A DNA stretch of 64,000 nucleotides, from positions 310,001 through 374,000 of the forward strand of contig OZ218961.1 in the NCBI GenBank assembly GCA_965112735.1, in the 5' to 3' direction. This document shows positions 1-40,927 of this stretch, piece after piece; position 1 is the stretch's first letter; each line of letters begins with the position of its first letter. The notes beneath the pieces were generated by a model. It saw nothing but the letters and a program-made list of their open reading frames with translations. It was not told the origin of the DNA and searched no databases. The translations under genes were made by a program, and so were the position numbers. Source of the DNA: Phaeosaccion multiseriatum. Taxonomy: Eukaryota > Protista > Ochrophyta, other classes.

Positions 1-418
1 CGACATCACCGTACCGAGCAGCGGCCCTGAAGAGCTCCCCAGTTAGCTTGAGGCCCTGCCGACCTGTCGCCCAGTTCAAGCACTCCACAGAGCTCACCAC
101 AGACGAAAACGCTGTCTCCACTGCTGGATACAAAGCGGTGTAGCTGGCCTTCCACTCCTTGCTCACACCCGCCACGAAGCAGAAGTGCCCCTTTCCCGAG
201 TGCTCCAAGATGGCACGAAGCAGCTCGAGATTCTCCAGGGCCTCGCGGCAAGCTTCAAAGAGCAGCCCATTCACTGAGGGCGTAGCACTGGCACCCCCAC
301 ATGCTGTTGTTGCCTGAGACCGTCTCAGCTGTCTCAGCCTCCTTCCCTGTGCAGAGTCACGAGGCGCCTCCCCATGCCCCAATGCCGTTCTCCTCCTCCG
401 CTGCAGCCTCGTCTCCAT
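1..418 (-). CDS. Ankyrin-like repeat protein, tandem copy A (5' part only; runs off the window edge)
   Basis: ATG at 418 gives METRLQRRRRTALGHGEAPRDSAQ...EALENLELLRAILEHSGKGHFCFVAGVSKEWKASY...AAARYGDV, near-identical to copy C. Confidence 0.8.
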   Translation of the reverse strand, partial: METRLQRRRRTALGHGEAPRDSAQGRRLRQLRRSQATTACGGASATPSVNGLLFEACREALENLELLRAILEHSGKGHFCFVAGVSKEWKASYTALYPAVETAFSSVVSSVECLNWATGRQGLKLTGELFRAAARYGDV

Positions 419-1465
419 TATTTCGTCGAAATGGGTCTTGGGATAAAGGCGAGTAAGTAAGCAAAATAGGAGGAACTGCTGGTCGGAGCTGATAAGTTGC
501 TGAAGAAGAGGGGGGTGGAAGGAAAGCGGAGCGGAGCAGCGAGACAGAGAGAGAGAGTGTGTGAGCGGCTGTGGAGGAAGGGCAGCAGCAGAGAGACCAG
601 ATGGCCAGCATGATCACATATTAACTCCTCCTAATCCTCTTCCCCCGTCTTGCTCCCCCCTCAAAGAGAGGGGCGGGCAATCTCCGGTAGCAGGCACTTA
701 CCAGCGCCAGCAGAATCCTTTCTTTGTATCAGGCTCACCCCCTTCCTAATGCTGCCTACTTTATTCACGCGTGGGAGGTCTTCTTGCGGCCCGTATATCT
801 TGTATGGAGCTCCGGGCCTGGGCAGGCCCACCATCTGTGAGTCTGGATGTCGAGGCCCTGAGGCAGGCAGTCCAGCCAGCTCCTCAGGAAGCTGCAAGCT
901 TCATCCGTGTGATGCCTTCCCTCGACCAACCCCCCTGGCCACCTTTGACAGCCCTTCGCTGACACACACACACACACACACACACACTGACACACATAAA
1001 TCTTAGGTTCGACCACATTCTCGATAGCAGGTAGCATGCCGGCTGGCGCCGGCAATAGCAGATCGCAGAGAGCACGTCAGGGGTCGATTAGGTTGATTTA
1101 ATTCCTGTAAGTTGCTAAAATAATAAAATTCCTTCCCCTGACTTCCCTCAATCTCAGTCTGGCATGTCTCGCTGCCGAAGTCCTCGTCGAACCATATATA
1201 CGTATTCACTGAAGCCTCCCACCAGCCGAAGGGCGCAAAGTGTCCCGCGAACATGCCACAGACACGATGATGAGGGCACCTCCCTCTGCTGATAGACCGC
1301 TTGTAACAAACATTCACAGCAGCGCCTCGAAGCGCGACAGTCACAGCCGTCCATCCTGCTCTGTACTGACCCACGCTCACCGGAAGCCTCCCCAAACGTA
1401 CGCTAACTGCCCCCCCACCCCTCCCGCCATGTCTCTCTCTCCATCTGTGCGAGCTTGTTCTCCTC

Positions 1466-2413
1466 TCAGTCCTGGCAGTCGCAGGGGTGCCCATTGGCGT
1501 GCACCCACTGCTTGATGTCCTCAAAGGTTTTGCCGTCCATGTCCCATACCTCGCCCTCCCAGTTACGCCCTCCATCATACAATCTGTCCCTGATGATCTG
1601 TGGGCACGACATTGCGTCCCACGGACACTGCACTTCTTCCGATCGGAGCCACTTCAGCACAGCAAGGCTCTTACCACTCAAGACTGCCTCTCTACAGACA
1701 CTCACATCCCAGTCACAGAGGTGGCGAGCATTGGCGTGGAGCAGCTGCAGTACCTCGAGGCGGCCCCCGTGAGCTGCAATAAAAGCCCCATCGCGCCAGT
1801 CGTTATAATCATTCCGTTCCAGCACGGCTCTCGTGGGAGGATGCTCGAGAAGCCATTCCACGACGGGAACATGTCCACCGCCGCATGCATCGTTCCAAGA
1901 GATGGAATCAAAGTCTGCCCCACCGTCGTCCGACAGCAACCACGTGAGCATATCTAAGCGCCCTTTACCTGCAGCTACGGCACACATTTCGCAGCCGTTA
2001 TAGTACCATGGGCACTGCTCCTTGTCGGGAAGGTCCTCTGAGCGCAGCCACTTGAGAACGCTCAGGCCATGCTCTCTGTTACGCACTGTTGCAGTACACA
2101 CATACTCACTCCAGGGACAGTCCTTGCCATGGAGAGCCTTGCAGACCTCGACATCTCCGTACCGAGCAGCGGCCTTGAAGAGCTTGGCATTTGGCACAAG
2201 GCCCTGCCGACACGTCGCCCAGTTCACGCACTCAACTGAGCTGACCACAGATGAGTATGCTGTCTTCACTGCTGGATACAAGGTGGTATAGCTGGCCTTC
2301 CACTCCTTGCTCACACCAGCCACGAAGCAGAAGTGCCACTTTCCCAAGTGCTCCAAGATGGCACGAAGCAGCTCGAGATTCTCCAGGGCCTCGTGGCAAG
2401 CTTCAAAGAGCAT
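1466..2413 (-). CDS. Ankyrin-like repeat protein with F-box-like N-terminus, tandem copy B (start uncertain: ATG 2413 or ATG 2758)
   Basis: Open ORF 1466..2758 with repeated CPW..C..AA..G.L.vL.WL motifs and an N-terminal ELLRAILEHL..HFCFVAGVSKEWK segment. The ATG used by copies A and C is ACG here (2561-2563). Confidence 0.8.
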   Translation of the reverse strand: MLFEACHEALENLELLRAILEHLGKWHFCFVAGVSKEWKASYTTLYPAVKTAYSSVVSSVECVNWATCRQGLVPNAKLFKAAARYGDVEVCKALHGKDCPWSEYVCTATVRNREHGLSVLKWLRSEDLPDKEQCPWYYNGCEMCAVAAGKGRLDMLTWLLSDDGGADFDSISWNDACGGGHVPVVEWLLEHPPTRAVLERNDYNDWRDGAFIAAHGGRLEVLQLLHANARHLCDWDVSVCREAVLSGKSLAVLKWLRSEEVQCPWDAMSCPQIIRDRLYDGGRNWEGEVWDMDGKTFEDIKQWVHANGHPCDCQD

Positions 2414-2671
2414 CCCATTCACTGAGGGCGTAGTACTGGCACCCCCACTTGCTGTTGTTGCCGGAGATCGTCTCAGCCGTCTCAGCCTCCTTCCCTGGGT
2501 AGAGTCATGTTGCGCCTCGCCGTGCCCCAATGCCGTTCTCCTCCGCTGCAGCCTCGTCTCCGTTGTTTCGTCGAAATGGGTCTTGGGATAAATGCGAGGA
2601 AGTAAGCACCCTAGGAGGAAAGGAAGGAGAGGAAGAAGGGGGGAGGGGAAGGAAAGGCGGAGGGGAGAGGG

Positions 2672-2702
<31 letters not shown>

Positions 2703-3541
2703 GGCTGTGGAGGAGGGGCAGCAGCCGAGAGACCAGATGGCCAGCATGATTCATACATCTGTTGTAACTCCTCCCACTCCCCTTCCCCGCAGCTGCTTCC
2801 CCGCAGCTGCTTCCCCGCTTCCCCCGTCGTGCTCCCCCCTCAAGAACAGAGGGGCGGGCTATCTCCGGTAGCAGGCACTCACCAGCGCCAGCAGAATCCT
2901 TTCTTTCTATCAGCCTTACTTTATTCAGGGATATCTTGAACTCCGGGCCTGGGCAGGCCCGCCATCTGTGAGTCTGGATGTCGAGGCCCTGAGCCAGCAA
3001 AGGCCCGGGGAGCTAAGGCCTAACTCATCAATTCCTTCCCACTGACACACATAAATCTTAGGTTCGACCGCTGACGTGTTATTGCTATCGACCACATTCT
3101 CGATAGCAAATAGCACGCCGGCTGGCGCCGGCGATAGCAGATCGCAGATAGCACGTCAGGGGTCGATTAGGTTGATTGATTCCTGTAAGTTGCTAAAATA
3201 ATAAAATGCCCTCCACTGACTTCCCTCAATCTCAGTCTGACACGTCTCGCTGCCGAAGTCCTCGTCGAACCATATATACGTATTCACTGAAGCCTCCCAC
3301 CAGCCGAAGGGCGCAAAGTGTCCCGCGAACATGCCACAGACACGATGATGAGGGCACCTCCCTCTGCTGATAGACCGCTTGTAACAAACATTCACAGCAG
3401 CGCCTCGAAGCGGGACAGTCACAGCCGTCCATCCTGCTCTGTACTGACCCACGCTCACCGGAAGCCTCCCCAAAAGAACGCTAAGCGCCCCTCCACCCCT
3501 CCCCCCATGTCTCTCTCTCCATCTGTGCGAGCTTGCCCCTC

Positions 3542-4639
3542 TCAGTCCTCGCAGTTGCAGGGGTGCCCATTGGCGTGCACCCACTGCTTGATATCCTCAA
3601 AGGTTTTGGCGTCGATGTCCCATTCCACACCGTCGTTATACCGTTCATACACTCCTTCGTCCCTGATGACTTGTGGGCACGACATTGCGCTCCACGGACA
3701 CTGCCCTTCCTCTGATCGGAGCCATTTCAGCACGGCAAGGCTCTTACCATGTACGACTGCATGAAGACAGACCTGAGCATGCCAATCGCAGAGGTGGCGA
3801 GCATTGGCGTGGAGGAACTGCAGTACCTCGAGGCGGCCCTCTCCAGCTGCATACCAAGCCCCATCGCGCCACTTGCCGTCTTCATTTTCTTCCAGCAAGG
3901 CTCTCGTGGGAGGATGCTCGAGAAGCCATTCCACGACGGGAATATGCCCACCGTCACATGCGTCGTTCCAAGAGAAAAAAGCAAAGTCTGCCCCACCGTC
4001 GTCCGACAGCAACCACTTGAGCATATCCAAGTGCCCTTCAAGTGCAGCTTGGCAACACATATAGGAGCCGTTACGGTCCCATGGGCACTGCTCCTTGTCG
4101 GGAAGGTCCTCTGAGCGGAGCCACTTGAGTACGCTCAGGCCATGCTCTCTGTTACTCACTGTTGCAATACACACATACTCACCCCAGGGACAGTCCTTGC
4201 CATGGAGGGCCTTGCAGACCTCGACATCACCGTACCGAGCAGCGGCCCTGAAGTGCTCCCCAGTTAGCTCGAGGCCCTGCCGACCTGTCGCCCAGTTCAA
4301 GCACTCCACAGAGCTCACCACAGACGAAAACGCTGTCTCCACTGCTGGATACAAAGCGGTGTAGCTGGCCTTCCACTCCTTGCTCACACCCGCCACGAAG
4401 CAGAAGTGCCCCTTTCCCGAGTGCTCAAAGATGGCACGAAGCAGCTCGAGATTCTCCAGGGCCTCGTGGCAAGCTTCAAAGAGCAGCCCATTCACTGAGG
4501 GCGTAGCACTGGCACCCCCACATGCTGTTGTTGCCTGAGACCGTCTCAGCCGTCTCAGCCTCCTTCCCTGTGCAGAGTCACGAGGCGCCTCCCCGTGCCC
4601 CAATGCCGTTCTCCCCCTCAGCTGCAGCCTCGTCTCCAT
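3542..4639 (-). CDS. Ankyrin-like repeat protein with F-box-like N-terminus, tandem copy C (365 aa, intronless)
   Basis: ATG at 4639 (METRLQLR...). About 6 degenerate ankyrin-type repeats (CPWDRNGSYMCCQAALEGHLDMLKWL etc.), stop at 3542. Confidence 0.85.
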   Translation of the reverse strand: METRLQLRGRTALGHGEAPRDSAQGRRLRRLRRSQATTACGGASATPSVNGLLFEACHEALENLELLRAIFEHSGKGHFCFVAGVSKEWKASYTALYPAVETAFSSVVSSVECLNWATGRQGLELTGEHFRAAARYGDVEVCKALHGKDCPWGEYVCIATVSNREHGLSVLKWLRSEDLPDKEQCPWDRNGSYMCCQAALEGHLDMLKWLLSDDGGADFAFFSWNDACDGGHIPVVEWLLEHPPTRALLEENEDGKWRDGAWYAAGEGRLEVLQFLHANARHLCDWHAQVCLHAVVHGKSLAVLKWLRSEEGQCPWSAMSCPQVIRDEGVYERYNDGVEWDIDAKTFEDIKQWVHANGHPCNCED

Positions 4640-4763
4640 TGTTTCGTCGAAAAAGGCCTTGGGATAAATGCGAGCAAGTAAGCACCTCCAGTAAGCCCTG
4701 CTGGCCGGGGCAGATAAGTTGCTGAACAAGAATGGAGTGGAAGGAAAGGCGGAGGGGAGAGGT

Positions 4764-4808
<45 letters not shown>

Positions 4809-5628
4809 GCGGCCGTGGAGGAAGGGCAGCAGCAGAGAGGCCAGATGGCCAGCATGATTCATACATCTGTTGCAACTCCTCCCACTCCTCTTCCCCGCAG
4901 CTGCTTCCCCGCTTCCCCCGTCTTGCTCCCCCCTCAAGAACAGAGGGGCGGGCCATCTCCGGTTGCAGGCACTTACCAGCGCCAGCAGAATCCTTTGTTT
5001 CTATCAGCCTCGCCCCCTTCCTTATGCTGCCTACTTTATTCACGCGTGGGAGGTCTTTGCCGGTTCTATGTAGACCTCCGTCTGCCAGACCCGCCATCTG
5101 TGAGTCTGGATGTCGAGGCCCTGAGCCAGCCAGGGGGGGAAAGTGAGTGCGCGCGCAATTTTGGTTTTTCCTCTCTACATCATTGACAGGTAAACAAAGA
5201 TGTGATGGGCCAGGGAGGGGGAGGGGAAGAAGCAGTCTGCCTTTTCGCAGCATGGAACGAGCTCAAGTAAGCTCAAAGATCTCAGGAGGAGAGGGATGGG
5301 TACGAGGTGAAGGATCTGTAAGCAGACAATGGCACGGAGCTGATCAGCAAAGAGGACGAAGGCTAAGCTCAATGCTCAAGGCATCAAGACGCATCTCACG
5401 GACCCGCCCCTACTACTACTGCGTGGAACAAAATGGGCTGAACGAGGCGCGGCACACGATGCTGAGGAAGATGGCGATAGGGCTACTGGTAGAGGCCAAA
5501 CTATCGGACTTCCTCCAGCTCATCTCGGCCCTCCTCCTTTGTCCTTCTGTTCCGCCTCACCTCCCGGCTGCTGCCGCTCGCCCTCCCCCTTTCCCCGTAT
5601 CATATTCAGATCCCATCCTCCTACTGGA

Positions 5629-6316
5629 ATGGCTATTGAAAGGCTCCTAGTCATTCATGGCGGCGAGCTTGCGAAGGATGTCGCTGAGCAAATCGAAAGG
5701 GCGGCCACTGCTGTCAACGTGGAATGCGCGCTCCAGTGTTGTAGTGAGAGACCGAAGAAGCTCGCGACTGATGTTCCGGCAACGACGCTCGCAGTGTTTG
5801 TAATGCAAACGATTGAAAATGCGCAGCCTACAGAAGAAGTACGTACAACAACGCAAAAGAAAAGACACTACCCTCGCTCTTTTTTCTTATTCCTCTCTTT
5901 CTTCTTCTTCCTCCTCCTCCTCTCTCTCTATCTCTCTCTCTCTCTCTCTTTCTCACTCACCAATACAACACCACACCTTCTCTATGCTTTTGTTTTAGGG
6001 TGGCGCGACACTGCGTTTTTTCAAGCGAAAGACGCATCCCAGCGACATGCTCAGCAGCAACAGTAGCAACCCCGACGGCTTACAGTACACGGTTTTAGGT
6101 GTGGGCGATTCCAACTTGCTCTTGGACCGACAGACGACAGGGGCAGCGGACTGCAACCAAGTCGCCCAGGAATTAGACCGACGGCTTGAGCAGCTGGGAG
6201 CAACCCGCCGGTATCCCCTCGGGCTGGACGACGAACGGGCAGGCCTGACCCAAGTCGAAGGGTGGATATCGGGCCTTTTGGAAAGTGTCCGCACTACTCT
6301 ACCCCCTAGCGGATGA
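5629..6316 (+). CDS. Stand-alone flavodoxin-like domain protein (exons 5629-5838, 5999-6316; 175 aa)
   Basis: A GT-AG intron joins ...VFVMQTIENAQPTEE|GGATLRFF... and YTVLGVGDSN...ELDRRLEQLGATRRYPLGLDDERAGLTQVEGW, typical of the FMN domain of diflavin reductases (MTRR/NDOR1/CPR). Confidence 0.85.
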
Positions 6317-6979
6317 GGAGAAGTACTACAGAGACGTAAAGCGTCGCAATTTTGGTCAACCAAAGAGTGTCCTGAACTAAAGCTCGTAATCTTTAGCTCT
6401 TAAGCTGTGGTGCCTTTAAATTTTAAAAAGTACAAGCCTCACCATTCAGACAAGCTTTCCTCTTTTCGCCCTATCAACGTGAAATGACGGCCAAACGCGG
6501 GGAGGGCTCGCTATGTACCATTCAATGTTCAGCTTTTGGAGCTTTTCTTCTGAGCTATCACTATTGCCGGCGTCAGTCCGCACGCCATCAGCTACCCCCC
6601 CCCCCCCCCCCTCGACCCCCCCCCCTCAGCTTCTACAGATGGATATGATTGAGCTAGCCTCCTAGTCATTGGGGGGTCAGGCGGCGCCATTTGGGCCATC
6701 TCACGCTATCAGCTAGAGACGCGTGCCAATAGCGCAGCTACCGGCGACAGCTCAATAGCGCATCAGGGGTCGACGAACCAACTTCTCCACCCTGTCCCTC
6801 TGCAGCCTCTCTCAGACCCCACAGCGAATGCAATTCTGGTATAAAACGGACGAGAGCACTGGCTGGTGGGTTTGGTTGGAGTACCAACGCGTGATGTATG
6901 CTCTCTCGCTCTACAACTCCACCCGCCATAATCCCATAGTCCTGTGCACAAGGACCTCGCTCGATTAGAGTGAGTGATC

Positions 6980-7044
6980 TGTGAGGGCCAGGCCACCGCC
7001 ATTTGTGAGGGCCAGGCCACCGCCATTTGTGAGGGCCAGGCCAC
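6980..7044. repeat. 24-bp minisatellite, ~2.7 copies (TGTGAGGGCCAGGCCACCGCCATT)
   Basis: Directly visible tandem copies at 6980, 7004 and 7028. Confidence 0.9.
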
Positions 7045-7300: not shown

Positions 7301-10276
7301 CTACCCTCCTCCACCGACCCGCATCACCACCCTCCCCGGGTTGTGTTCGTCTTCCCAGACTTCGACGCCCGGCCTCTCCTGCAAGTAGGCCAGCACCGCG
7401 GGCTTGAGAACGCTGACGCCATCCTCACTGCCTCGGCCTCGGCCTGTGATGACTTGGATCTCACCCTCCACCTTCTCCACTGAGACCACGTGACGAAGCG
7501 CTGCCTTGCTCGTTCCCCTAGTGAAGTCGTGCAAGTCCACCTCCTGCCCCCCTTTCTTCCAGTGATTCAAGACCCCTTGCGATACGGCCTCTGCGTACAG
7601 CTCGTCAGCAGCCTCCTCGTCACCACCCTCCTGCAGAGCATCAATGGTGGCACTGTAGCTGATTTCATCGGGAGCAAGTCCTTCTGCCCTCATTTCCCTC
7701 AGTAAACCCGTTGCCTCCACATGTTGCCCAGCCCTGGCGCATGCATTAATGGTGGCACTGTAGCTGATTTCGTTCAGAGCGAGTCCTTGTGCCTTCATCT
7801 CCCTCAGTAAACCCATTGCCTCCACGTGTTGGCCAGCCCTGGCGCATGCGTTCATGGTGGCATTGTAGCTGATTCCATTGGGAGCGAGTCCTTGGGCCTT
7901 CATCTCCCTCAGTAAACCCATTGCCTCCATGTGTTGACTGGCTCTGGCGCATGCATTAATGGTGGAGCTGAAGCTGATTTCATCCGGAGCGAGCCCTTCC
8001 GCCTTCATCTCCCTCAGTAAACCCAATGCCTCCATGTGTTGACTGGCTCTGGCGCATGCATTAATGGTGGCATTGTAGCTGATTCCATTGGGAGCGAGTC
8101 CTTGGGCCTTCATCTCCCTCAGTAAACCCATTGCCTCCACATGTTGGCGGGCCCTGGCGCATGCATTAATGGTGGAGCTGTAGCTGATTTCATCCGGAGC
8201 GAGCCCTTCCGCCTTCATCTCCTTCAGTAAACCCATTGCCTCCACGTGTTGGTTGGCTCTGGCGCATGCGTTAATGGTGGAGCTGAAGCTGATTTCATCC
8301 GGAGCGAGTCCTTGTGCCTTCATCTCCCTCAGTAAACCCATTGCCTCCACGTGTTGGCTGGCCCTGGCGCATGCGTTAATGGTGGAGCTGTAGCTGATTT
8401 CATCCGGAGCGAGCCCTTCCGCCTTCATCTCCCTCAGTAAACCCATTGCCTCCACGTGTTGGTTGGCTCTGGCGCATGCGTTAATGGTGGAGTTGTAGCT
8501 GATTTCATCCGGAGCGAGTCCTTGTGCCTTCATCTCCCTCAGTAAACCCATTGCCTCCACGTGTTTGCTGGCCCTGGCGCATGCATTAATGGTGGAGCTG
8601 TAGCTGATTTCATCCGGAGCGAGCCCTTCCGCCTTCATCTCCCTCAGTAAACCCATTGCCTCCACGTGTTGGTTGGCTCTGGCGCATGCGTTAATGGTGG
8701 AGTTGTAGCTGATTTCATCCGGAGCGAGTCCTTGTGCCTTCATCTCCCTCAGTAAACCCATTGCCTCCACATGTTGGCTGGCCCTGGCGCATGCATTAAT
8801 GGTGGAGCTGTAGCTGATTTCATCCGGAGCGAGCCCTTCCGCCTTCATCTCCCTCAGTAAACCCATTGCCTCCACGTGTTGGTTGGCTCTGGCGCATGCG
8901 TTCATGGTGGAGCTGTAGCTGATTTCATCCGGAGCGAGTCCTTGTGCCTTCATCTCCCTCAGTAAACCCATTGCCTCCACATGTTGGCTCGCCCTGGCGC
9001 ATGCATTAATGGTGGAGCTGTAGCTGATTTCATCCGGAGCGAGCCCTTCCGCCTTCATCTCCCTCAGTAAACCCATTGCCTCCACATGTTGGTTGGCTCT
9101 TGCGCATGCATTAATGGCAGCATTGTAGCTGATTCGATGGGGAGCAAGTCCTTCCGCCTTCATCTCCCTCAGTAAACCCATTGCCTCCACATGTTGGCTC
9201 GCCCTTGCGCATGCATTAATGGCAGCATTGTAGCTGATTTCATCCGGAGTGAGTCCTTGTGTCTTCATCTCCTCCAGTAAACCCAATGCCTCCACGTGTT
9301 GGTTGGTTCTCGCGCATGCATGAATGGCGGAGCTGTAGCTGATTTCATTGGGAGCGAGCCCTTCCGCCTTCATCTCCCTCAGTAAACCCATTGCCTCCAC
9401 GTGTTGGTTGGCTCTTGCGCATGCGTTAATGGCAGCATTGTAGCTGATTTCATTCGGAGTGAGCCCTTGTGTCTTCATCTCCTCCAGTAAACCCAATGCC
9501 TCCACGTGTTGGTTGGTTCTCGCGCATGCATGAATGGCGGAGCTGTAGCTGATTTCATCCGGAGCGAGCCCTTCCGCCTTCATCTCCCTCAGTAAACCCA
9601 TTGCCTCCACGTGTTGGTTGGCTCTTGCGCATGCGTTAATGGCAGCATTGTAGCTGATTCGATGGGGAGCGAGCCCTTCCGCCTTCATCTCCCTCAGTAA
9701 ACCCATTGCCTCCACGTGTTGGCTGGCCCTGGCGCACGCATTAATGGCGGAGCTGTAGCTGATTTCATCCGGAGCAAGTCCTTCTGCCTTCATCTCTCTC
9801 AGTAAACCGATTGCCTCCACATGTTGGCTGGCCCTGGCGCATGCATTAATGGTGGAGCTGTAGCTGATTTCATCCGGAGTGAGTCCTTCCTCCTTCATCT
9901 CAGCCAGAAGTCTCAAAGCGCCCTTCCACCGCCCGCACTTCCCAATCGCGGTAATCGCAGCATTCAAACATTGCTGGTTGGGCTTGAGGCCCTCTTGCCG
10001 TGCGCGCTCCAGAGTAGGTGCCACCCTTTTCCAATTCCTGCTCCTCCCCAGATCTTGAATCTCCCTCATGAGCCGTGTCTGTCTCGACTTCTCACTCCCC
10101 CCAGTAGAGTAGCAGGACCATTGCTGCGGCAGCTGCTTCTGCTGATGGAGAGTAGAGTCGGCACGCCGTTCAGCAGCGGTGCCTCCCACTGCTGCGGGTC
10201 CTCTTCTATTCCTGCCAATGCAAGAGGAGTAGCAGGCTCTGGCCACCCCCCTCAACGACATTGCTCTCTTCAGCAT
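7301..10276 (-). CDS. P-class pentatricopeptide repeat protein with C-terminal SMR (small MutS-related) domain; probable mitochondrial presequence (991 aa, intronless)
   Basis: 35-aa repeats EISYSSTINACARASQHVEAMGLLREMKAEGLAPD. The C-terminal VDLHDF...VITGRG...VLKPAV...NPGRV motifs match SMR. The N-terminus MLKRAMSLRGVARACYSS is Arg/Ser-rich and acid-free. Confidence 0.95.
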   Translation of the reverse strand: MLKRAMSLRGVARACYSSCIGRNRRGPAAVGGTAAERRADSTLHQQKQLPQQWSCYSTGGSEKSRQTRLMREIQDLGRSRNWKRVAPTLERARQEGLKPNQQCLNAAITAIGKCGRWKGALRLLAEMKEEGLTPDEISYSSTINACARASQHVEAIGLLREMKAEGLAPDEISYSSAINACARASQHVEAMGLLREMKAEGLAPHRISYNAAINACARANQHVEAMGLLREMKAEGLAPDEISYSSAIHACARTNQHVEALGLLEEMKTQGLTPNEISYNAAINACARANQHVEAMGLLREMKAEGLAPNEISYSSAIHACARTNQHVEALGLLEEMKTQGLTPDEISYNAAINACARASQHVEAMGLLREMKAEGLAPHRISYNAAINACARANQHVEAMGLLREMKAEGLAPDEISYSSTINACARASQHVEAMGLLREMKAQGLAPDEISYSSTMNACARANQHVEAMGLLREMKAEGLAPDEISYSSTINACARASQHVEAMGLLREMKAQGLAPDEISYNSTINACARANQHVEAMGLLREMKAEGLAPDEISYSSTINACARASKHVEAMGLLREMKAQGLAPDEISYNSTINACARANQHVEAMGLLREMKAEGLAPDEISYSSTINACARASQHVEAMGLLREMKAQGLAPDEISFSSTINACARANQHVEAMGLLKEMKAEGLAPDEISYSSTINACARARQHVEAMGLLREMKAQGLAPNGISYNATINACARASQHMEALGLLREMKAEGLAPDEISFSSTINACARASQHMEAMGLLREMKAQGLAPNGISYNATMNACARAGQHVEAMGLLREMKAQGLALNEISYSATINACARAGQHVEATGLLREMRAEGLAPDEISYSATIDALQEGGDEEAADELYAEAVSQGVLNHWKKGGQEVDLHDFTRGTSKAALRHVVSVEKVEGEIQVITGRGRGSEDGVSVLKPAVLAYLQERPGVEVWEDEHNPGRVVMRVGGGG
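7667..9871 (-). repeat. Coding tandem array of 21 near-identical 105-bp units
   Basis: 2205 bp = 21 x 105. The central part shows 210-bp higher-order periodicity (alternating ...AEGLAP/...AQGLAP units). Confidence 0.95.
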
Positions 10277-10659
10277 TGTTCTCAACCCATTCGAGGAAGG
10301 ATATAGCTAAAGGAAAGGAGAGGATGGAGCGCCGATGCAAGAAGAACAAGTTCGCGGCCTCCTCATCCAAAGTCACAGATGGTTCGGCCATGGGGGGAGA
10401 GGGGAGAGAGAGAGAAAAAAAAAGCTCTTTCTTTTATTCTCGCTTCCTCAGGTGCGTACCTTCTAGCCGGAAGGGCGGTGTTAGACCCCCCAGCCAAACT
10501 TTTGTGGAGTAGGGTGCGCCCCGTTCTCACTGCTGCTGCCTCCCCTCCTCCCCCCTTCCTTTTAATTTGTGTCTACTGCTGCTGCTGCCCGCCTTGCGCA
10601 GAAGCTCAAACCTTCCAAGAGCTTCCCTTTCCGATCTCCGTGTGGTCCTTTCTGACCTC
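10277..10659. promoter_or_regulatory. Probable bidirectional promoter (PPR-SMR / hypothetical gene)
   Basis: Head-to-head start codons ~380 bp apart. Inferred from gene arrangement only. Confidence 0.45.
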
Positions 10660-26900: not shown

Positions 26901-29900
26901 ATATGTCACCCTTTTACGACGGTGCGGAGGCGTGGCAGCGGCAAGGAGAACCTTTGAAGGTTGATGAGTGGGAGAGCGGGGGGCCATCTGCTGCCATCGG
27001 ACAGGCGTGGAGCAAGGAGGTGACCATGCCCGTTCCGACCATAACCTTCGACGTTAAAGTACACAACTTTGACTTTTTACTGAGGTGAGGGAAGGAAGGA
27101 AGGAAGGAAGGAAGGAAGGAAGGAAGAGGCAATGGGGGGGGGGGGGGCGTCTCGGGCAGGAAGAAGGGAACGGAACATCAATGTTAGAGGCGTATGGGGA
27201 GAGAGGGGACGCATCTACATCATTGGTATGGGCGCACAAGGGGATGGGGGAAGGAGACTGTCTGAACCGAGAGGAGACTTTTCCTGTTCCCCCGGTAGCA
27301 CAGCTCTCACACTCTTCCTCGACTCGGAAACTCTCCCTCCTCCTCCTCCTGCTCCTCCTCCTCCTCCTCTCGTCTCCTTCAGTGTATCGCAGCTGCAACT
27401 CTTGGTGGAACTTAGTGAACGCCTCAAGGAGAGAGCCTACCCGTCCATCGCTGCCACGAGCAGCGAGTTCGAAACCTGGCGAGCGTTTCAGGACTCGGCG
27501 TATCCGGCGACGACGAGGGCCAACAGCATCAGCTCTCTTGCAGGCGGGAGAGGCTCTTCTTCTCACGCCGCATCACCAACTGCTGCAGCTGGTGGTGCTG
27601 CTTCCTCATCGTCCTCTTCCTCCGCGGCAGCCGCTGCGCCAGGGGGTTACTTGTCGGGGTGGATTCCGCGTTGGCTTGGTGGGGGGGGCGCTTATCACAA
27701 CATGGAGGAGGAAGAGGAGGACTTCGACTACGAAGGTTATGAGGATGATGACGATGACGATGAGGATGAGTACGGCAGGGGTGGGGGGGCGAGCAGCTAT
27801 GGGGCAGGCACGAGTCATATGGGAGGGGAGGAAGATGGCAGTGGACGGCACAGCGGTGCACTACTCGCAGCACCAGAGGAGTTTTACCTTGCTTCTTTGA
27901 CCATCGGGAGCCTCTCGCTGACACTCGTAACGGCTCATGAGGAGGAGGAGGACGAGGACGAGGACGAGGAGGAAGGGGGGGGGGCGGGTGCAGTTGATGG
28001 GGAGGAAGAGGAGAGTGAGGGTTTCCGAGTTGAGGAGGAGGGCGAGGTTAGGCCCTGGTCTGGAAGGAACAGGACTCGTTCTTCTCGGCGTAGGATGGCC
28101 ACGGACACCCCGACCAAGCATGGCAAGCGTCTCGGGCTGGGCTCTGGAGGAGGAGGAAGAGGAGGCCCACTCAGGGCGCCTGACGACGACGACGAGGAGG
28201 AGGAGGACACAACAAGGTTTGGCGACGATGCGGTCTCCGTCATGTCCGTGCCAGTGGCGGGGATGGGCAACGTGCTGGTCGAGATTGGGCCTCTGGCGAC
28301 CCCCAGCACTCCGCACCGCAAGGTGGCTCGTAAGGCGGTGCAACTCTTGAAGCTTCGTATTGATAGCGTCTCAGCCGATGTGCAGGTGCGTCACCCGGTC
28401 CCGTGTTGTTAGGTGCATCACCTGGTCCCGTGTGTGTATGTGTCTGTGTGATGTGTGTGTCTGTGTGATGCGTGTGTGTATGTATGTGTTTGTGTGTGTG
28501 TGTGTGAGGGAGGGAGGAAGGGAGGGAGCGAGGGCGTGAGTGAGTGAGTGCTTGAGTTTTAAATTAAGTTTGTGTATGAGGGAGTGAGTATGTGAGGGAG
28601 TTAGTGAGTGCTTACGTGTGTGAGTGAGTAAGTGAGTGAGTGAGGGAGTGAGTGATGGAGTTAGCGAGTGAGTGAGTGAGTGAGGGAGGGAGGGAGTTAG
28701 CGAGTGGGTAAGTCTCTGACGCGACCCCTTTGGTTTTGGCTGGGCGTAAATTGTGTGTGTGTGTATGTGCGTGTGCGTTGTTTTTTGCATCCCGTCAGGC
28801 TCTTGTATGGACGGACGAAGGGGGCCGATCTGGCCACGCCCTAGACTGCCATCTGCAAGTGGCGGCCATCGCCCTCGATCACAGAACCGTACCCTTTGTT
28901 CTGTGGGGAAATGCCGATGGAATTACCGACGAGATTACCGGTGCTGAGGCTGCAACGGCAGCAACAGCAGCAGCAGGAGGCGGAAGAGGAGGAGGAAGGA
29001 TGGCCGGGGATGGGGGGGAGGGGGACGGTTTCCGAGTCGAGAGGGAGAGCGCCGCAGCCATGCTGCAGAGAAGGTTTCCAGAGCTCGTGGGCATGACCGA
29101 TCCTGACTCCGAGTCGGATTACAGAGGAGGCGACGACCTCACCTCTCCTGGATCACCAACTGCTGGGGGTAGGAGAAGCAGGCCTGCCCCTCAGCTGAGA
29201 GATGGGGTCGACTTGGGTGCCAGCGCCCCTGCGGCCTTGGGGGGATATGCAACTTCAGGAGTTGGTGATACCACAGCTGCAGCTCGCGACGGCGGTGGTG
29301 GGGATGGTGTAGAGGCAGAGGAGGCTGATGAAGACGGGTTGTTCGGAGATGACCCTGGACGTCAGAGCGGAAACCTCCCAACGCTCCCCCCGGGGTTGCT
29401 CAGTCAGAGGCATACGGGGCGGAGAAGGGGCAAGGACCGCGCCATTCAGGTGCGCTTTCTGCGGCTTCAAACACACGAGACAGAGGAGGAGGGAGGCTTC
29501 CGAGTCGAGGAGGAGGAGGAGGACGAGGGGGAGGGGGGCGCGGCGGCGGCGGAGGAGGAGGAAGGCAAGAGAGAAGGAAGACCACTAGCGGGTACCGGTG
29601 TCGGAAAGAAGGCCGGCAGCGGCAGTAGCCTTGGTCAAGGTAAAGGCCAGGCTTCTTCCTCCTCTTTCTCCTCTCCGGCAACTCCGAGGCAGGACACTGG
29701 GGGCGGTGCACTCATGTGTCTCGGAGCTAGTGCGGCCGCTCTGCAGCAGCAGTTGGTGATACAACAGCAGCAGCAGCAGTTGGTGATACAGCAGGAGCCC
29801 CTGCCGGTGGCGTGGCGTAAGAGCGTGCAGCATTGGTATGAAGCAAGCCTTGGGCCTCTTGATGTGCGGCTGAGCAGCACTGTGCTTCAAGGGCTTGAAG

Positions 29901-32900
29901 ATGTGTGTCTTCAAGCCTCCCGGAGGGGACAAGCCACGCGGGGGGAGGCGGGAGGAGGGTCTCCGAGTCGGGAGGAGGAGGAGGAGGAGGAGGAGGAGAA
30001 AGAGGAGAAGGGGAAAGAGAGGGTGGTGATGGAGACCTCTACTACCGCTGTCGCTGCCGGAGTTGGTGATACGGCTGTCATCGCCGGTGCTGTGACTGGT
30101 ACTGAGGGCGGCGCACAGCAACAGCTAGTCAGTCCTGATCCAGCAGCTGTTGGAGATACAGTCGTAGTCGCACCAGAAGGTTTTCCGAGTCGAGAAGGAG
30201 AGGGGGCCGCAGCTGTTGGTGATACAGCCACAACAGAAGAAGAGGAGGGTCTCCGCGCGGTGGTCTCTACGAGCGGGAGAGCGTGCTGCGGCCCCGTGCA
30301 TGTGGCCTGGGATACCCGCCCCCCCGGGGCTGGGGCGACATCGCACCCCCTCGGGCCGCCTCGCGCCCTTTTCTCTTCTCCCTGTGCATCGAGCTCGAGT
30401 TCGAGTTCAACGTCTGGCGACGACCCGAATAAGAACCTCCCCACCATCTTCTGCGTTGCTCGACTTTGTGGGGCGAGGATGAGCTCCCGCAGCGAGCCTA
30501 CTGCCGCTCCTGATAAGTCACTGAATGTCGAGGTCCCGAATGTCGCTAATGTCGATACTGAGGCTGGCCGAGGGGGGGCGTCGCGCACGCACCAGCACCG
30601 TCTGCGGCGCCGGCGGTTACGGAAGGAGCACGATCGCATCGTGTTCACAGTTGGCGTGGGGGAGCTTAGCCTGACGCGCGCTCTTACCCCGTTCAATATC
30701 GATGTTCTCGATGTCGATGATGTCGAAGTAAATCATGTCGATGTCGATTGTAGTGAGGCTGGCGGCGATGGTGGCGATGGTGATACGGATGGAGGCTTGG
30801 CGACGAACACTCCTGCCGAAGAGGACGAGAAGGAGGACCGGGAGGAGGGCGAGGATGACGGCGAGGAGGACGGTGAGGAGGGGCGCGAGGAGCGAATGAG
30901 CACAAGAAAGGCAAGGAAGAGAAGGAGAGAGAGAGGGAGAAGGAGAGTGCTTCTTCTGTCGGATTTGGGTATGGAGATCGTCTTCGGCAGAGGCACGGCG
31001 GACTCCGAGTCGCAATGTGCTCAGGGCGAGCAGCAGCAGCAGCAGGAGGAGGAGGAGGAGCAGTTGGTTGTGCATCAGCCGCAGGAAGAGAAGGACGACG
31101 ACGACGACGAGGAGGAGGAGGAGGAAGACGGTTACCGATTTGAGAGAGGCCGTCCTCGCAGTCGCTCATCTGGTACTTGTGTATCACCAACCGGTGGTGG
31201 TGCTGCTGCTGGGGCTGTATCACCAACTGCTTCACCTGTGGTGGGGATGCGATCGCGCCACAGCTTGACGTCCCTCTTCAATTCTTCCCTGCGCCACTCG
31301 CCTGCCGGAGGAGGAGGAGAAGGAGGAGGAGGAGGAGGAGGAGGAGGAGGAGGAGGAGGAGGAGGAGGGAGACTCGGTGGGGTCCTCTGGGGGAAATTTT
31401 CCCCTCCTCCTCCTCCTCCTCCTCCTCCTTCTCCTCCTCCTCCTCTCGCACAAACTGCTGCACCTTGCTCTGCTTCTCTGCCTCCCCCGTCCCCGCCGTC
31501 GAGCTCCCCTACTGGGACGGTGGGTGACACTGAAGGAGTGTTTGAGCGACCGCGTCGCAGCCTTTCCATGGGAGGGCAGGGAGGGCAGGGAGGGCAGAGA
31601 GGGCAGACATTCGAAGCGGACGACGCTCAAGGCTTCCAACCCAGTGCTGATGGTGCGGTTGGTGGTGGTGGTGGTAGTGGTGGTGGTGGTGGTGGTGGTG
31701 GGGAAGAAGGAGGAGGGGGGGGAGGGGGCGGATGGCAGCCGATGGCTGTGAAGGTGAAGTCCCGCTGTGTGGCCCTCTGTTTGAGCAAAGCCTCTGCACA
31801 CGCCATGACCAGCCTTCTTGTGCTGCACCACAAGAGAGACGCGGCTGCAGCAGTTGGTGATACATCAGCAGAAGCAGTTGGTGATGCAGCAGCAGCGGCG
31901 AGACGGCAGAGCGAGAAGGGTAGCAGCGATGGAGAGGGCGAAGGCGTAATGATCATCGCTGGAGGGGCCGGGGTGGATGTGTGTCTGGCGGGCCCCTCGG
32001 GATCGGGGTCGGCACCCCCTGGGGTATCTTGCACCGCCTCGATGCACTCTCTAAGAATCTCCAGCCTCACAAATGGCAGGGCCGGAGAGCGGCCGGCGGG
32101 AGCCTTCCCGGGGGAGACGCTGGTGGGCAAGGAAAGTTCCTCGGAGCGCTCCTCGGAGAGTTCCTCGGAGAAAGAACTTTCCCACCGGACTGATGAAGGG
32201 CTTGACCTCCCCGAGGGGAGGGGCACGCAGCTGCTTGCTTTCCACAGTGGTACAGGGATGGCAGCTAATGGCGGCGGTGCAAGTGGCGGTGGAGGAAGTG
32301 GTCTGCCGGCGTTGACGGTGCACGTAGAGACAGGTCGCTCTACCTGCCCAAAGGGAGGGCGAGAGAGAGGGAGGGAGGGAGGAGGCTCTCTCGTGACGGT
32401 GGATATGTTTTATGTGTCGTGTCAGGCACATTACATGCACCTCATGTACATCATAGGGCATATGGTTAAGTTCTCGGACAATGTCGCGGCTGGCTTGGCG
32501 GTGTCTGTATCACCAACTGCTGGGGCAGCATCAGCAGTAGCAGCAGCAGCAGCAGCAGGAGGAGGAGGAGGAGAAGTTAAGAGAAACGACCACAACGACA
32601 AGCACAACAAGAAGGAGAAGGAGAAGAAGAAGACCGAGACGGCGCTGGAGCTGACGTTTAGTGGTGGTGACATCAGCATGCTCTTTCCCGGCTACATGGA
32701 GTTCTCGGCACCGCTATGCACGGGAAGGTGCACGCTGGACTCGTTCTCCGCCAAGGTGCAGGAGTGCGTGCTGAGGCATCGCCCCCCTGGGGAGGCCTTT
32801 CTTTGCTTGGGGCAGGGCCGGCCCTTCCTGGCCGTGGATGGAGAGCTGCGGATGGACGTCAAGGTACGATATAGCAAGTCGATATGAAATGTCGAGGTTG

Positions 32901-33897
32901 GATACGCTGTCGACGTGTGGCGTCGTACGGTTCGATTAGAGGTGGTGGATTTGGTAGTGCTTCGTAGTTAGGATGTGGTGAGTGTAGGTAGTGGCGCGTA
33001 AGCACTTACTCACCTTGGTCATGCGCTCACTCCACTCACTCACTCACTCCACTCATTCACTCACTCACTCATTCACTCACTCACTCACTCACTCACCTAC
33101 TCACTCCCCCACCACTCACTCACTCACTCACTCATTCACGCACTCACTCACTCACTCACTCACTCACTCACTCGGTCACTCGCTCACTTCACTGACTCTC
33201 ACGCTCACGGGGTCACTCCACTCACTCACCACTCAGGCACTCATCCACTCAATCACTCACTCACTCACTCACCACTCCCTCACTCACTCACTCCCTCGCT
33301 CACTCGCTCACTTCCTCACTCACTCACTCACATACCTCACTCACCCTTCCTTCCTCTCAACTGCTCACTCCCTCACTCACTGACTTACTCCGAGCGTAGC
33401 ACGGAAAGGGTTTGACTTGAGCATATCCCGCCCACCCTCTGTCTGATATATGCTAACCTAGTCACTCCTCTCCTCTTCTCTCCTCTTCTCTCCTACCCTG
33501 TCACTCCTTGGCTCTTTCCTCCCTCCCCGTCCACTGCCATCCACTGCCATCCGCTACCATCCACTGCCACCCCATCATTCTCAGGGCCTAAGCGCGCCTG
33601 ACTTATCGGTGTCCATGAGCGCGGAGCGAGCTTCAATGAGCCTGACACCAGGCTCCACCGCAGGCATGGGGCAATTCGTTCGGGCAATGGGGGAACCCAT
33701 GGAGCTCGGTGCGAGTCGGGACAGAATGAGGGAGCGGAAACGAGAGGACGAGGCCAAGCGACGTCGTAACGGGGGTCGGAGCACCTTCAAACGCTGCTTC
33801 TCGACCTCCATCGAGGCTGCGGTGGAAGACCTGCAGGTGGACTTCCTGAATGACTTTTCAGATGGGGCAAGGAATGGCAGTGGAGGGGCAGGGGGAT

Positions 33898-33932
<35 letters not shown>

Positions 33933-36423
33933 GCAACAGCAGCAGTAGCAGGAGGAGGAGGAGGAGAAGGAGGAGGAGGAGGAGGCATATGGGCGGGGGC
34001 GGGGCTGGGGCGGGAGACGGCTTCGCGGTTCAACGTGGAGGGGCTGCGTGTGGTGTCCACGTTTGGGGTGGTGACGGGCGAGCTCACAGCAGCACAGGTC
34101 ACGGCGTCGTCGGCAAATGTGAATAATGGTGTTGACCCAGGCAATGGTGCAGCAGCAATTGGTGATACAGAAGCAGCAGCAGAAGGAGGGGGAGGCAGCG
34201 AGAACGGCCTTGACGGGGGGGGGGGGGGAGAGGAGGAGATGGACCCGGCAGCATCCTATCCACAGAACTTTGCGACGGTTTCAAACGTTTCGTTTCAGGT
34301 TCGAAGTCTGTCTGCGAGTCAAGCGGTCAACCCCCACCCTGGGGGGCGAGCATGGGCACTGCCCCCTCGGGCACAGGCCGTGGTGGCTTCGTTCCTCTCC
34401 TCCGGGGGGTCTCCTGGCAGCGGCTCTGTATCACCAACTGCTGCACGTGCCGCACGTAGCCTCTGTGCCTCCCTCTTTCGGCGCCAATCGGAAGCGGCAT
34501 GGGTCTCCCCTCTCTTCTCCGACGAGGGTGCCATCGCGGAGGAGTTACAACTGGCGGGGCATGACATCGAAGCACAACATCCGCACGAGGTTGAGCACGA
34601 CTCATCCAGCAGCGTCCCCCCGGGGTGTCCCCAGGGGGTGCTTCGCGGATTGGCCCTTTCGTACCCATTCATAATTCCCTGCGATGGCAAGACTTCTGCG
34701 GGTGACTCGGCGGCTGCTGTATCACCAACTGGTGGTGGTGCTGCTACTGCTGCTGCAGCGGCTGCGTATGGGCATCGAGGCGCGGGCGACGAACACCAGA
34801 GGCCAAGAGCGTCGAGTAGCGGCACTAGTAGTAGTACTAGTAGTAGTCGAGAAAGAGGAGGAGGACACAGAGCAACAAGAGCAAGCGCAAGACCAAGACC
34901 TGCGCTGATGGTGGAGTCTCATGTGGTCACAGCCCCTCTCCAGCGCTCCTCTCAGCTGGTCAAGGTGAGCTTGGCCCCTCTGCAGCTTGTGTGTGTTGGA
35001 CCTGTCCTTGGAGGGATGGCTCGACACGCGTCTTCCTTCATGACGCTGGCCTTCCCGGTGCCGAGGGGCAAGGCCAAGGTGGCGATAGACTCCTTGTACG
35101 ACTTCGACTTGGCGGGGTGTGCAGTGGTCCTGCCGGCGCAGGCGGTGGTGCCAGTAGGAGGAGGAGGAGGAGGAGGAGGAGGAGGAGGAGGAAGAGGAGG
35201 AGGGGGGGGGGGAGGGGGGGGCTTGCGGCTCTCGCTCAGCAAGTGCCGTATATGGCCTACTGACGACGCCAATGCTGTACATGTATCACCAACTGCTGCG
35301 GGAGTGGAGCGAGTGAATCGCATCGAGGTGGACGGCATGCAGCTCACGGTCGCAGAGGGCGACTGGATGGAAGGACTCGTGCTGGACACCGACACGGAGG
35401 GCCACTCAAACTTCAACTCAGAATCAGAGCCGCCCTCTCACATCCACGCCCTCACCCCTACCACCACCGCCACCCTGTCTGCCGCTTCGAGAGAGAGAGT
35501 GGCTGCTCATGAGGAGGACCACGACCATAGTGGTGGTGGTGGCTGTGGTGGTGGTGGTGGTAGTGGTGGTGATGGTGGTGGTGGGCCGCTGCGTACACGA
35601 GGAGGAGCCCTCATGCGACGGCTCCTTGCTACACCCTTGGAGGTCAGAGGGTTAATCAGAGGGCGCCACAGGGGCAAACCTACAACTGGCGGAATCACAG
35701 ATGGCAGCAGCCGCAGCGGTTCTGACACCACCACCAACAGCAGTAGCAGTAGCACCAGTACTGCATGGGTCAAGGGCGCTGACGAGTGGAGCGTTTCCGC
35801 GGTGCAGCTCTTCCTGTGCCCGAGAGACATGGAGATTCTGCTTGACGTGTTGGTGCACTGCAAAAGTGGGCTGGACATCTCACAGATGGCGAGTAGTGCC
35901 CCCCTCTTCTCCACGCGGAGGAGAAAGGACATGAAGATGAAGGCCTCGTTGGCGAGCGCTGTACCACCAACTGCTGCTGCTGCATCACCAGCTCCCTCCT
36001 CACCTTGGCCTAAGTTCGAGCTGCCGGGTGTACGCTTGGTGCTCTGTGCTGCCCGAATCACCAACAGCTGCAGCAGCAGAGGCGCACCGGTCGTAGAGGT
36101 GGCCGTGGAGAGCGTGAGAAGTGGGAAGAGAAGGCCGGAAACGGTGCGAGGGGGAGCGTCTCCGAGTCGAGGAGCAGGAGGAGGAGCGGGGGGAGAGGGA
36201 GGCGTTCATTCCTCCACGGGACACGGGGCCTCTCACGAAGGTTTGCAAGTCGAGCAGGAGGAGGAGAAGGAGGAGGAGAAGGGGGATTCTGTAGTGACGA
36301 TCAGACGAGTGGGCGTAACTGTCTGGAGCCAAGGGGAACAGGGGATGTGTCTGCTGGAAACGGGCCACTTGATTTCGACCCCACGGGGTCGTCCTGGTCG
36401 TCGTCGGACACCGGAAGAGGAGT

Positions 36424-36454
<31 letters not shown>

Positions 36455-39400: not shown

Positions 39401-40876
39401 CCTGCTGGGAGATGTGCAAGTTGTGAATTCACTTCCAATTGGCAGCGACGTCAGGTGGAGGGTTGTGGAAGCCCCCCGGGGAGATGAGCAGGATTCGAGG
39501 CGCCCTACTGACCCATGGAATGCCCACGTATCACCAGCTGCTGCTGATGCTGCTGCTGCTGCATCACCATTTGCTGGTGGTGATGGTGGTGGTGGAGGAG
39601 GAGGAGGAGGTGGACTGCTCCATGGCACGAGTGGCAGAACGACAGTGGGCGGCGACGGGAAAGGGCACTCGCTCCTCATGCAGTCCACTGCTTGCGTCAA
39701 GGGCAGTGGCAGCACAGTCACAGATGGCACTAGCGGCGTGGGGGTAATCCGCCTTGAAGTTTGCTTAGGCGAGGCGATTGGTGGGAGCATGCCACGCAGC
39801 AAGGCAGGGACTGGCGCCGTCGCCATCGGTGTTATTGATGTTCCGTCACTGATGGACGGCGGTGTGGGGATAGAGCAGGAGCAGGGGGTGGAGCAGGTGG
39901 TGATACAGGAGGGGGGGGAGCGAGGAACGCCAACTGTGGGAGCAGCAGCAGAGGAAGGAGAAGTACGAGGAGGAGGAGAAGGAGGAGGAGCAGCAGCAGG
40001 AGGAGGAAGTGGTGAACCAATTCAGCAGCAGCAGTCAACAGATGGGGGCGTATGGGCCGTCCAGCGGGCGGCGCAGTGGGTCCGGGGGGTGGGAACGGAG
40101 CTCAAGTGGTGCGCCCTCTTGCGATGCCGCTCAGGAGGAGGAGGAGGGGGAGGAGGAGGAGGAGGAGGAGGAGGAGGGGGGAGGAGGAGAGGACATTTGG
40201 GTGTGGGTTGTGGCGCGTAGAGAGGTGGTGAGCGCTGATGCATGGGAAGAGGGAGGGGGAGGAGGAGCAGCAGCAGGAGCAGGAGCAGCAGGAGGAGGAG
40301 GAGGAGGAGGAGGAGGAGGAGGAGGAGGAGGAGGTGTTGGGAGGAGATCTCCTTCTCAGCAAACGCAAACCCAAACGTATCGCCAACGCCGCCACCACCA
40401 CCATGTGGGCCCCCTGAGGATAGAGTTCCGCCCTCTTGTGAGTGTCCACAACGCGTGTGGGGGAGACGTGCTTGCCTACCTCGGTAGGGATGCCGTCCCC
40501 CCCTTTCTAGGTACGCCATGTGGTTATCCAGCGGATCGAGTGCGAGTGGGTAAGACGCGCGGGCTGCTGCAAGGAGTGTCGCCATTTGGAGGGGGCAGCA
40601 GGGCTGAGAAGGAGGAGCAGGAGCAAGAGGACAAGAGCTCGCAAGTGCTTTGTGTGACGCCCGCCAGAGGCGGAGAAGGAGGAGGTGGGAGGAATGAGCC
40701 TCAGCAGTTGGTGGTACAGCGTGAGCCGCATCGGGTCCTGTTGCCCGCTCGCCTTCTTTGCCGCGCCTGCCCAGCCACGTGGCTGGAGCCCCAAGAGTGA
40801 GTGCATCACAGATGACATTGTATGCACAGCATGCACACGTGTGTGTGTTTGGTGTGGGTGTGGGTGTGGGTGTGTC

Positions 40877-40927
<51 letters not shown>

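Follow-up and report, generated by a model that had tools for sequence, protein, structure and literature searches.

A tandem array of ankyrin-repeat genes

The 64,000-nucleotide (nt) stretch analysed here, which we call the window, comprises positions 310,001 to 374,000 of contig OZ218961.1 from the alga Phaeosaccion multiseriatum, and its first 5.3 kb is a tandem array, with a period of ~2.1 kb, of genes that encode ankyrin-repeat proteins. The genes lie head-to-tail on the minus strand, two of them as full copies (B and C) and one as a partial copy (A), and a tblastn search found no fourth copy in the 64 kb. The predicted layout of each gene product is a short basic N-terminus, a degenerate F-box-like head of three helices, six ankyrin repeats and a conserved capping tail. 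The genes and their domains are as follows.

2-418, minus strand: copy A, a partial coding sequence made up of the first 139 codons from the ATG, the remainder of which precedes the start of the window (from tblastn and translation)
1466-2758, minus strand: copy B, an intact open reading frame (ORF) of 430 codons (from the ORF list, translations and alignment)
3542-4639, minus strand: copy C, a 365-codon coding sequence from the ATG common to A; the open frame runs upstream to 4855
1619-2236, minus strand: ankyrin domain of copy B (from the B/C alignment and the same analyses as for C)
3692-4309, minus strand: ankyrin domain of copy C, six helix-turn-helix repeats at residues 111-316 with hypervariable helix-1 blocks (from DSSP applied to the structural model)
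2282-2389, minus strand: putative head of copy B, equivalent to that of C
4355-4462, minus strand: putative head of copy C, residues ~60-95

Where A and C have their common start codon, copy B has ACG (2561-2563), and translation of B would need either an upstream in-frame ATG (at 2758), which is reached through a GA microsatellite, or an internal ATG (at 2413), which lies just before the head.

Pfam searches of the window proteins found only ankyrin families, namely Ank_4 at 39-40 bits (cut-off 22.7) and Ank_2 at 28-38 bits (cut-off 27.3), with E=4e-10 and E=3e-9, respectively, for copy C; no NACHT or NB-ARC domain was found by Pfam. An AlphaFold model of C, built on 22 family sequences, has predicted local distance difference test (pLDDT) scores of mostly 80-97 at residues 111-330, where it forms six helix-pair repeats with a period of ~33 residues followed by a capping tail. 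The matches from the Protein Data Bank (PDB) that Foldseek listed for the model are all ankyrin solenoids, including designed ankyrin repeat proteins (DARPins) and the E3 receptor FEM1; only the top match reaches E<=0.001 (4e-4), and the TM-scores are weak (0.2-0.45). Pfam, the model and the fold matches support the notion that the window proteins are real ankyrin-repeat proteins. The six repeats of any one protein have only framework residues in common.

Copies B and C differ mainly along one stripe of helix 1

Proteins B and C are 75% identical over their ORFs and 79% identical when counted from the common N-terminus, and the indels between them are in frame. Along the nucleotide alignment, 50-nt windows with 44-48 matches alternate with windows that have 32-36, and the period of this alternation, ~100 nt, is that of one repeat. 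An initial annotation of the sequence had described a conserved repeat framework with variability clustered at the same positions of each repeat, and had quoted four pairs of differing blocks from B and C. All four pairs are found in the B/C protein alignment, and counts bear out the clustering that they illustrate: with secondary structure taken from the AlphaFold model, 24 of 58 helix-1 residues differ between B and C, as against 3 of 52 in helix 2 (Fisher p=1.3e-5). The differences are significantly autocorrelated at lag 1 (none of 5000 permutations gave a value as high) and at lag 4 (p=0.0016). Specifically, they make an i, i+1, i+4, i+5 stripe on helix 1, together with the loop ahead of that helix. 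In DARPin numbering, positions 5, 6, 9, 10, 13 and 14 of the repeats carry 25 of 36 possible differences, and none falls at positions 8, 11, 12 and 15, which are buried. This clustering is beyond chance.

As a control, we used the exposed positions of helix 2 and of the loop that follows it, of which 1 in 36 differs between B and C. Among 20 distant relatives the mean entropy is 2.79 bits on the helix-1 face, 2.07 bits at these control positions and 0.91 bits in the core. The control positions are therefore free to vary in relatives yet hardly differ between B and C, which indicates that tolerance alone does not predict where the two copies differ.

The variable sites had also been proposed to coincide with the predicted binding face. 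Their location on helix 1 and its leading loop bears this out in part, and the further step, their placement in the concave groove, is based on secondary structure, on the periodicity along the helix and on what is established of ankyrin geometry. On this geometry the helix-1 stripe is predicted to line the concave groove and so to form the ligand-binding face; the ankyrin interface consists of the inner helices and the hairpin loops, as restated in a published study (PMC4986451).

Substitution rates at the variable positions

Our rate estimates derive from one full pair of copies, B and C. Over the whole gene the NG86 method gives a synonymous rate (dS) of 0.198, a non-synonymous rate (dN) of 0.122 and a ratio (dN/dS) of 0.61. 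dS is even over all classes of site (0.19-0.23) and is not raised in helix 1, which argues against a locally raised mutation rate. The classes differ in dN/dS, as estimated with NG86, LWL85 or maximum likelihood (ML).

Helix 2: dN/dS 0.12
Head: dN/dS 0.24
Rest of the ankyrin domain: dN/dS 0.21
DSSP helix 1, class chosen in advance: dN/dS 1.71 (NG86), 2.37 (LWL85), 3.97 (ML)
DARPin randomised positions, class chosen in advance: dN/dS 1.39-1.96
Stripe, class chosen post hoc: dN/dS 1.03 (NG86), 5.4 (ML)

The estimates for the post-hoc stripe lie so far apart because, where a codon has been hit more than once, counting methods score its third-position changes as silent; half of the differing stripe codons carry two or three changes.

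Purifying selection acts on the scaffold, made up of the head, helix 2, the tail and the buried residues of helix 1 (dN/dS 0.12-0.25 between B and C), which indicates that the genes are working now or were doing so recently. The exposed helix-1 stripe and the loop preceding it evolve faster than silent sites, with dN in the classes chosen in advance at 0.34-0.39 against a gene-wide dS of 0.19-0.20. In a codon bootstrap, dN of these classes exceeded dS of the rest of the gene (p=0.028 and 0.012); when the same classes were compared with the few local silent sites, the excess was not significant (p=0.08 and 0.24). Thus the positive selection proposed in the initial annotation finds support against gene-wide dS, with dN/dS of 1.4-4 in the classes chosen in advance and p=0.012-0.028, and falls short of significance against local dS (p=0.08-0.24). 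Put in terms of the ratio itself, the point estimates for these classes lie above 1, rather than at or below it, and are not significantly above 1 locally. The much younger pair of A and C (proportion of synonymous differences, pS, 0.0095) can be compared over the 139 codons of A, of which eight differ, seven non-synonymously and one synonymously. Two of these differences fall in the variable block of the first repeat, and the 7:1 excess is suggestive and not significant. These rates are best explained by positive selection on the face, a reading that is moderately supported by, and unproven from, a single pair.

The substitution spectrum carries no mutator signature. In stripe codons the differences between B and C comprise all six substitution types with no dominant base, and the ratio of transitions to transversions is 23:32 in the stripe, 39:43 in other coding sequence and 11:8 in the flank. 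None of the three gene units repeated in the window is an invariant template copy. With six substitution types, a dS that is flat in helix 1 and no template copy, the data do not bear out a targeted diversification process, which had been raised as an alternative to selection.

The array is a recombination mosaic

The flanks of the genes hold several further features.

1009-1465, minus strand: 3' flank of copy B, with a near-identical core at 1141-1396
3088-3541, minus strand: 3' flank of copy C, with a near-identical core at 3219-3474
1016-1091 and 3095-3170: a GC-rich, partly palindromic short element at the unit boundaries, 93% identical between units
4754-4818: (GA)n/(CT)n microsatellite in the 5' leader of C, whose translations are runs of LS and which was flagged as a repeat in the contig mapping
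2654-2708: the counterpart of this microsatellite in copy B

The non-coding flanks of B and C had been described as ~99% identical. The count given for 1141-1396 against 3219-3474 (3 mismatches in 256 nt) is exact, but it applies to the core only: the whole 3' flank is 95.8% identical (435 of 454, with 3 gapped positions), and its outer parts are 92-94% identical, about as similar as the coding scaffold. The 5' region is 75-96% identical, with indels around the GA microsatellite.

The array is a recombination mosaic. In the alignment of A, B and C, 37 of the 44 informative sites within the N-terminal part of the coding sequence group A with C against B; sites grouping B with C against A dominate in the 5' leader, and those grouping A with B against C do so further out. 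Consistent with this, tracts diverged by ~1% (A and C in coding sequence, B and C in the flank core) adjoin segments diverged by 6-20%. Unequal crossing-over and gene conversion among the copies probably made both the mosaic and the near-identical flank core, and a recent tract of conversion or crossover inside this mosaic array is the best reading of the identity of the flanks. The initial annotation had named such a tract, coupled with neutral divergence of the coding sequence, as an outcome that would undercut its interpretation; conversion or crossover does appear to account for the flank, but the coding divergence is not neutral.

The flank core could also be a constrained element or a discrete mobile element. 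One run, which is labelled as another organism, has a 258-nt contig that differs from 3222-3474 at 4 of 253 nt and has the same end borders. Scans of positions 1-7000 with Rfam (E up to 1) and for tRNAs found nothing real in the flanks, the sub-threshold matches lying on the GA-rich leader only. Folded as RNA, the two strands of the core had z-scores of 0.18 and 1.04, which give no hint of a structured RNA, and the ORF that overlaps the flank has no Pfam match. In the mapping of public contigs, the copy of the short boundary element at 3095-3170 is in the deepest coverage bin of three runs from the source organism, and contigs break at 3101 and at 3146/3166. A run with the label of a second organism has short contigs that match the element as well, at low depth. 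The tandem duplication may have been seeded by this element, as a dispersed repeat.

The N-terminal head

An F-box-like N-terminus had been proposed for these proteins, and the evidence that we obtained for it depends on the route taken. Pfam searches with F-box (PF00646) and F-box-like (PF12937) gave no match at E<=1 in the window proteins, and a profile made from the window heads alone matched nothing in the PDB. The canonical Leu-Pro at the start of helix 1 is replaced, the aligned position reading L-E-N in A, B and C. The route through relatives, on the other hand, leads to F-boxes. Pfam F-box or F-box-like matches occur in 6 of 22 family members, all of them distant relatives (best E=1e-6), and the heads of the window proteins align in register with the heads of the relatives (hhalign, 87% probability, E=4e-6). 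A combined head profile of relatives and window copies matched only F-box chains in the PDB, among them FBXW7 (6e-7), FBXL17, FBXO4, Skp2, TIR1 and Legionella AnkB (5k35). The model of the head has a pLDDT of 88, and its top fold matches are the F-boxes of Skp2 and FBXW8, with root-mean-square deviations of 1.2-1.5 Å over 29-31 residues; the best of them, that to Skp2 (1.2 Å over 31 residues), has a non-significant E=8. This transitive profile evidence weakly supports a head that is F-box-like and possibly degenerate. The head is predicted, with less confidence than the features described above, to dock on SKP1, which would make each paralogue a substrate receptor of the SCF type and would send the partner bound in the groove to ubiquitination.

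Relatives and family size

When public contigs were mapped on positions 1-5400, one run alone contributed 2397 pieces at >=90% identity. Many contigs depart from the sequence of the window exactly at the stop codons at 1466 and 3542 and continue into unrelated sequence, indicating that the genome has many paralogues with a common coding scaffold and different flanks. Outside this genome the best relative of the protein is from Chloropicon roscoffensis (38% identical), the others coming from diatoms and from unnamed eukaryotic contigs. The window proteins are absent from a collection of 5.8 billion proteins, which suggests that the lineage is poorly sampled. Searches of the ESM Atlas returned generic ankyrin clusters only, and neither a metagenome scan nor a viral-contig scan found close relatives.

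Neighbouring genes

The neighbours of the array are ordinary cellular genes, which encode a PPR-type repeat protein and a SARAF-domain protein. The former is a 994-residue ORF on the minus strand (7301-10285) with about twenty near-identical PPR-like repeats of 35 residues followed by a distinct C-terminal domain. The latter (50390-51514; Pfam E=2e-21) has one weak partial relative among the 5.8 billion proteins, a further sign of the poor sampling of the lineage. Two plus-strand ORFs at 5539-6316 are possible exons of a flavodoxin-domain gene (Pfam Flavodoxin_1, a weak match at E=0.0066, below the cut-off), and as exons of one gene they would imply an intervening intron. The region 28730-44896 holds three very long plus-strand ORFs (1385, 2203 and 1403 codons), with high GC content and a strong positive GC skew, and the one of the three that was searched against Pfam gave no match.

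Weighing the explanations

We consider it probable that the array belongs, as a small tandem cluster, to a large gene family that evolves fast, and that diversifying selection acts on the binding face of its recombining paralogues. Natural selection for new or altered binding specificities would drive the changes in the helix-1 stripe, and unequal crossing-over and gene conversion among the copies would generate the mosaic. A number of observations weigh against this explanation. The rates come from one full pair of copies; the post-hoc stripe gives a dN/dS of only 1.03 by NG86; and the bootstrap excess in the classes chosen in advance is not significant against the few local silent sites. The assignment of the variable residues to a single surface comes from secondary structure, periodicity and textbook geometry. 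Divergence of the flank (1-4%, and 4% for the whole flank) is far below the coding dS of 0.2, a contrast that needs conversion, constraint on the flank, or import into the coding part from other paralogues. The start codon of A and C is missing from copy B, and the locus is contained in none of the RNA runs. As for the head, the direct Pfam and PDB searches were negative and the Leu-Pro is replaced.

The main rival, which we think unlikely, is relaxed constraint only, such that the exposed face of helix 1 drifts and gene conversion homogenises a scaffold that is conserved. That local dN/dS is not significantly above 1, and that NG86 on the stripe is so close to 1, are what this rival would lead one to expect, and it is these positions, too, that vary most in distant relatives (entropy 2.79). 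It does not readily explain why dN of the classes chosen in advance exceeds gene-wide dS (p=0.01-0.03), why ML estimates of dN/dS are 2-5, or why half of the differing stripe codons carry two or three changes; moreover, the positions of the back face, which are tolerant of change too, barely differ (1 of 36). Decay of the copies as pseudogenes is another rival, and copy B with its missing common start codon and the lack of RNA evidence would fit it. We give this hardly any credence, given ORFs that are intact over 365-430 codons, scaffold dN/dS of 0.12-0.25 and indels that are in frame.

Other explanations concern the source of the variation. In one, which we regard as improbable, helix-1 segments were imported in patches from dispersed paralogues by ectopic gene conversion, so that the duplication behind B and C would be very recent, as the flanks suggest, and their coding parts would since have been overwritten piecemeal. 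The contrast between a flank divergence of 1-4% and a coding dS of 0.2, as well as the mosaic array, would follow from such import, and since homology to other paralogues ends at the stop codon, only the coding sequence can receive ectopic conversion. The synonymous differences, however, are evenly distributed, and the head and helix 2 have them as well as the variable blocks. Nor does import explain why the changes are confined to one face, for which selection is still required, so that it complements the explanation by diversifying selection more than it replaces it. A targeted diversification machine (one resembling a diversity-generating retroelement or AID, or templated by cassettes) that writes into helix-1 codons might explain why the blocks are so precise and why many codons differ at several nucleotides. 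Such a machine is very improbable here: the changes fall into six substitution classes without base bias, their ratio of transitions to transversions in the stripe (23:32) is set against 39:43 elsewhere, dS in helix 1 equals dS elsewhere, the three units include no invariant template, and the variation lies between germline paralogues and not inside one locus.

Comparison with known systems and biological meaning

This kind of system is known from the ankyrin repeats of fungal NOD-like receptors (NLRs) and from adaptive F-box families. Hypervariable ankyrin repeat domains, as well as TPR and WD ones, are described in fungal NLRs by Dyrka et al. 2014 (PMC4986451), who report features reminiscent of those found here, namely a conserved scaffold with recombination and concerted evolution shuffling the units, and positively selected or polymorphic sites at the inner helices and the hairpin or loop of the concave face (PMC4986451). 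The window proteins are unlike fungal NLRs in that Pfam finds neither NACHT nor NB-ARC in them, the partner domain being the F-box-like head; in that their repeats are not near-identical within one protein (>85% identity being the mark of the fungal type); and in that the variation lies between tandem paralogous genes and not between the repeats or alleles of one gene.

Expanded F-box substrate-receptor families in nematodes and plants are reportedly under adaptive evolution, a finding attributed to Thomas, in Genome Research in 2006. These families are like the genes studied here in joining a constant adaptor head to a fast-evolving binding domain and in forming tandem clusters subject to birth and death; they differ in having FTH, FBA, kelch or leucine-rich repeat (LRR) binding domains and canonical F-boxes, where the window genes have ankyrin repeats and a degenerate head. 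Ankyrin repeats are combined with an F-box-type motif for docking on SCF in Legionella AnkB, in other F-box and ankyrin proteins of intracellular bacteria, and in the ankyrin/PRANC proteins of poxviruses. Legionella AnkB (5k35), which the family head profile matches, has an N-terminal head followed by ankyrin repeats, like the window genes. The proteins of the AnkB type and those of poxviruses are pathogen effectors, however, whereas the family described here is chromosomal and sits beside ordinary cellular genes, with no close relative found among viral contigs; in poxvirus proteins, furthermore, the box is at the C-terminus. DARPin libraries have in common with these genes a fixed framework, and the natural variable sites overlap the randomised positions 2, 5, 13 and 14. 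Unlike DARPins, the natural stripe also uses positions 1, 6, 9 and 10 (the canonical TPLH site) and a longer helix 1, and position 33 is invariable here. In the literature searched we found no description of algal F-box-ankyrin arrays, nor of tandem algal genes in which an F-box-like head is joined to a variable ankyrin groove of the DARPin kind.

On its own the cluster, with two full copies, one truncated copy and modest statistics, adds little to what is known of such systems; the useful extra that the window provides is the mosaic structure. The mosaic, together with the contrast between flanks and silent sites, indicates that recombination among the copies, and not a mutator, shapes the array. 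If the genes are diversified E3 substrate receptors, then ankyrin grooves, which engineered DARPins exploit as their binding surface, would serve a microbial alga as a natural library for variable recognition, and would offer a handle on host-virus or self/non-self conflict in a lineage whose innate immunity is almost unknown. A wider possibility, which we put forward as doubtful, is that the genome carries F-box-like ankyrin receptors by the tens to hundreds, as a germline repertoire for intracellular recognition to which this cluster would belong; the groove of each paralogue would bind a different foreign (viral or parasitic) or self protein, and the head would pass that protein to an SCF ligase. 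Such a repertoire, if real, would amount to a protist version of immune receptor repertoires on a DARPin-like scaffold.

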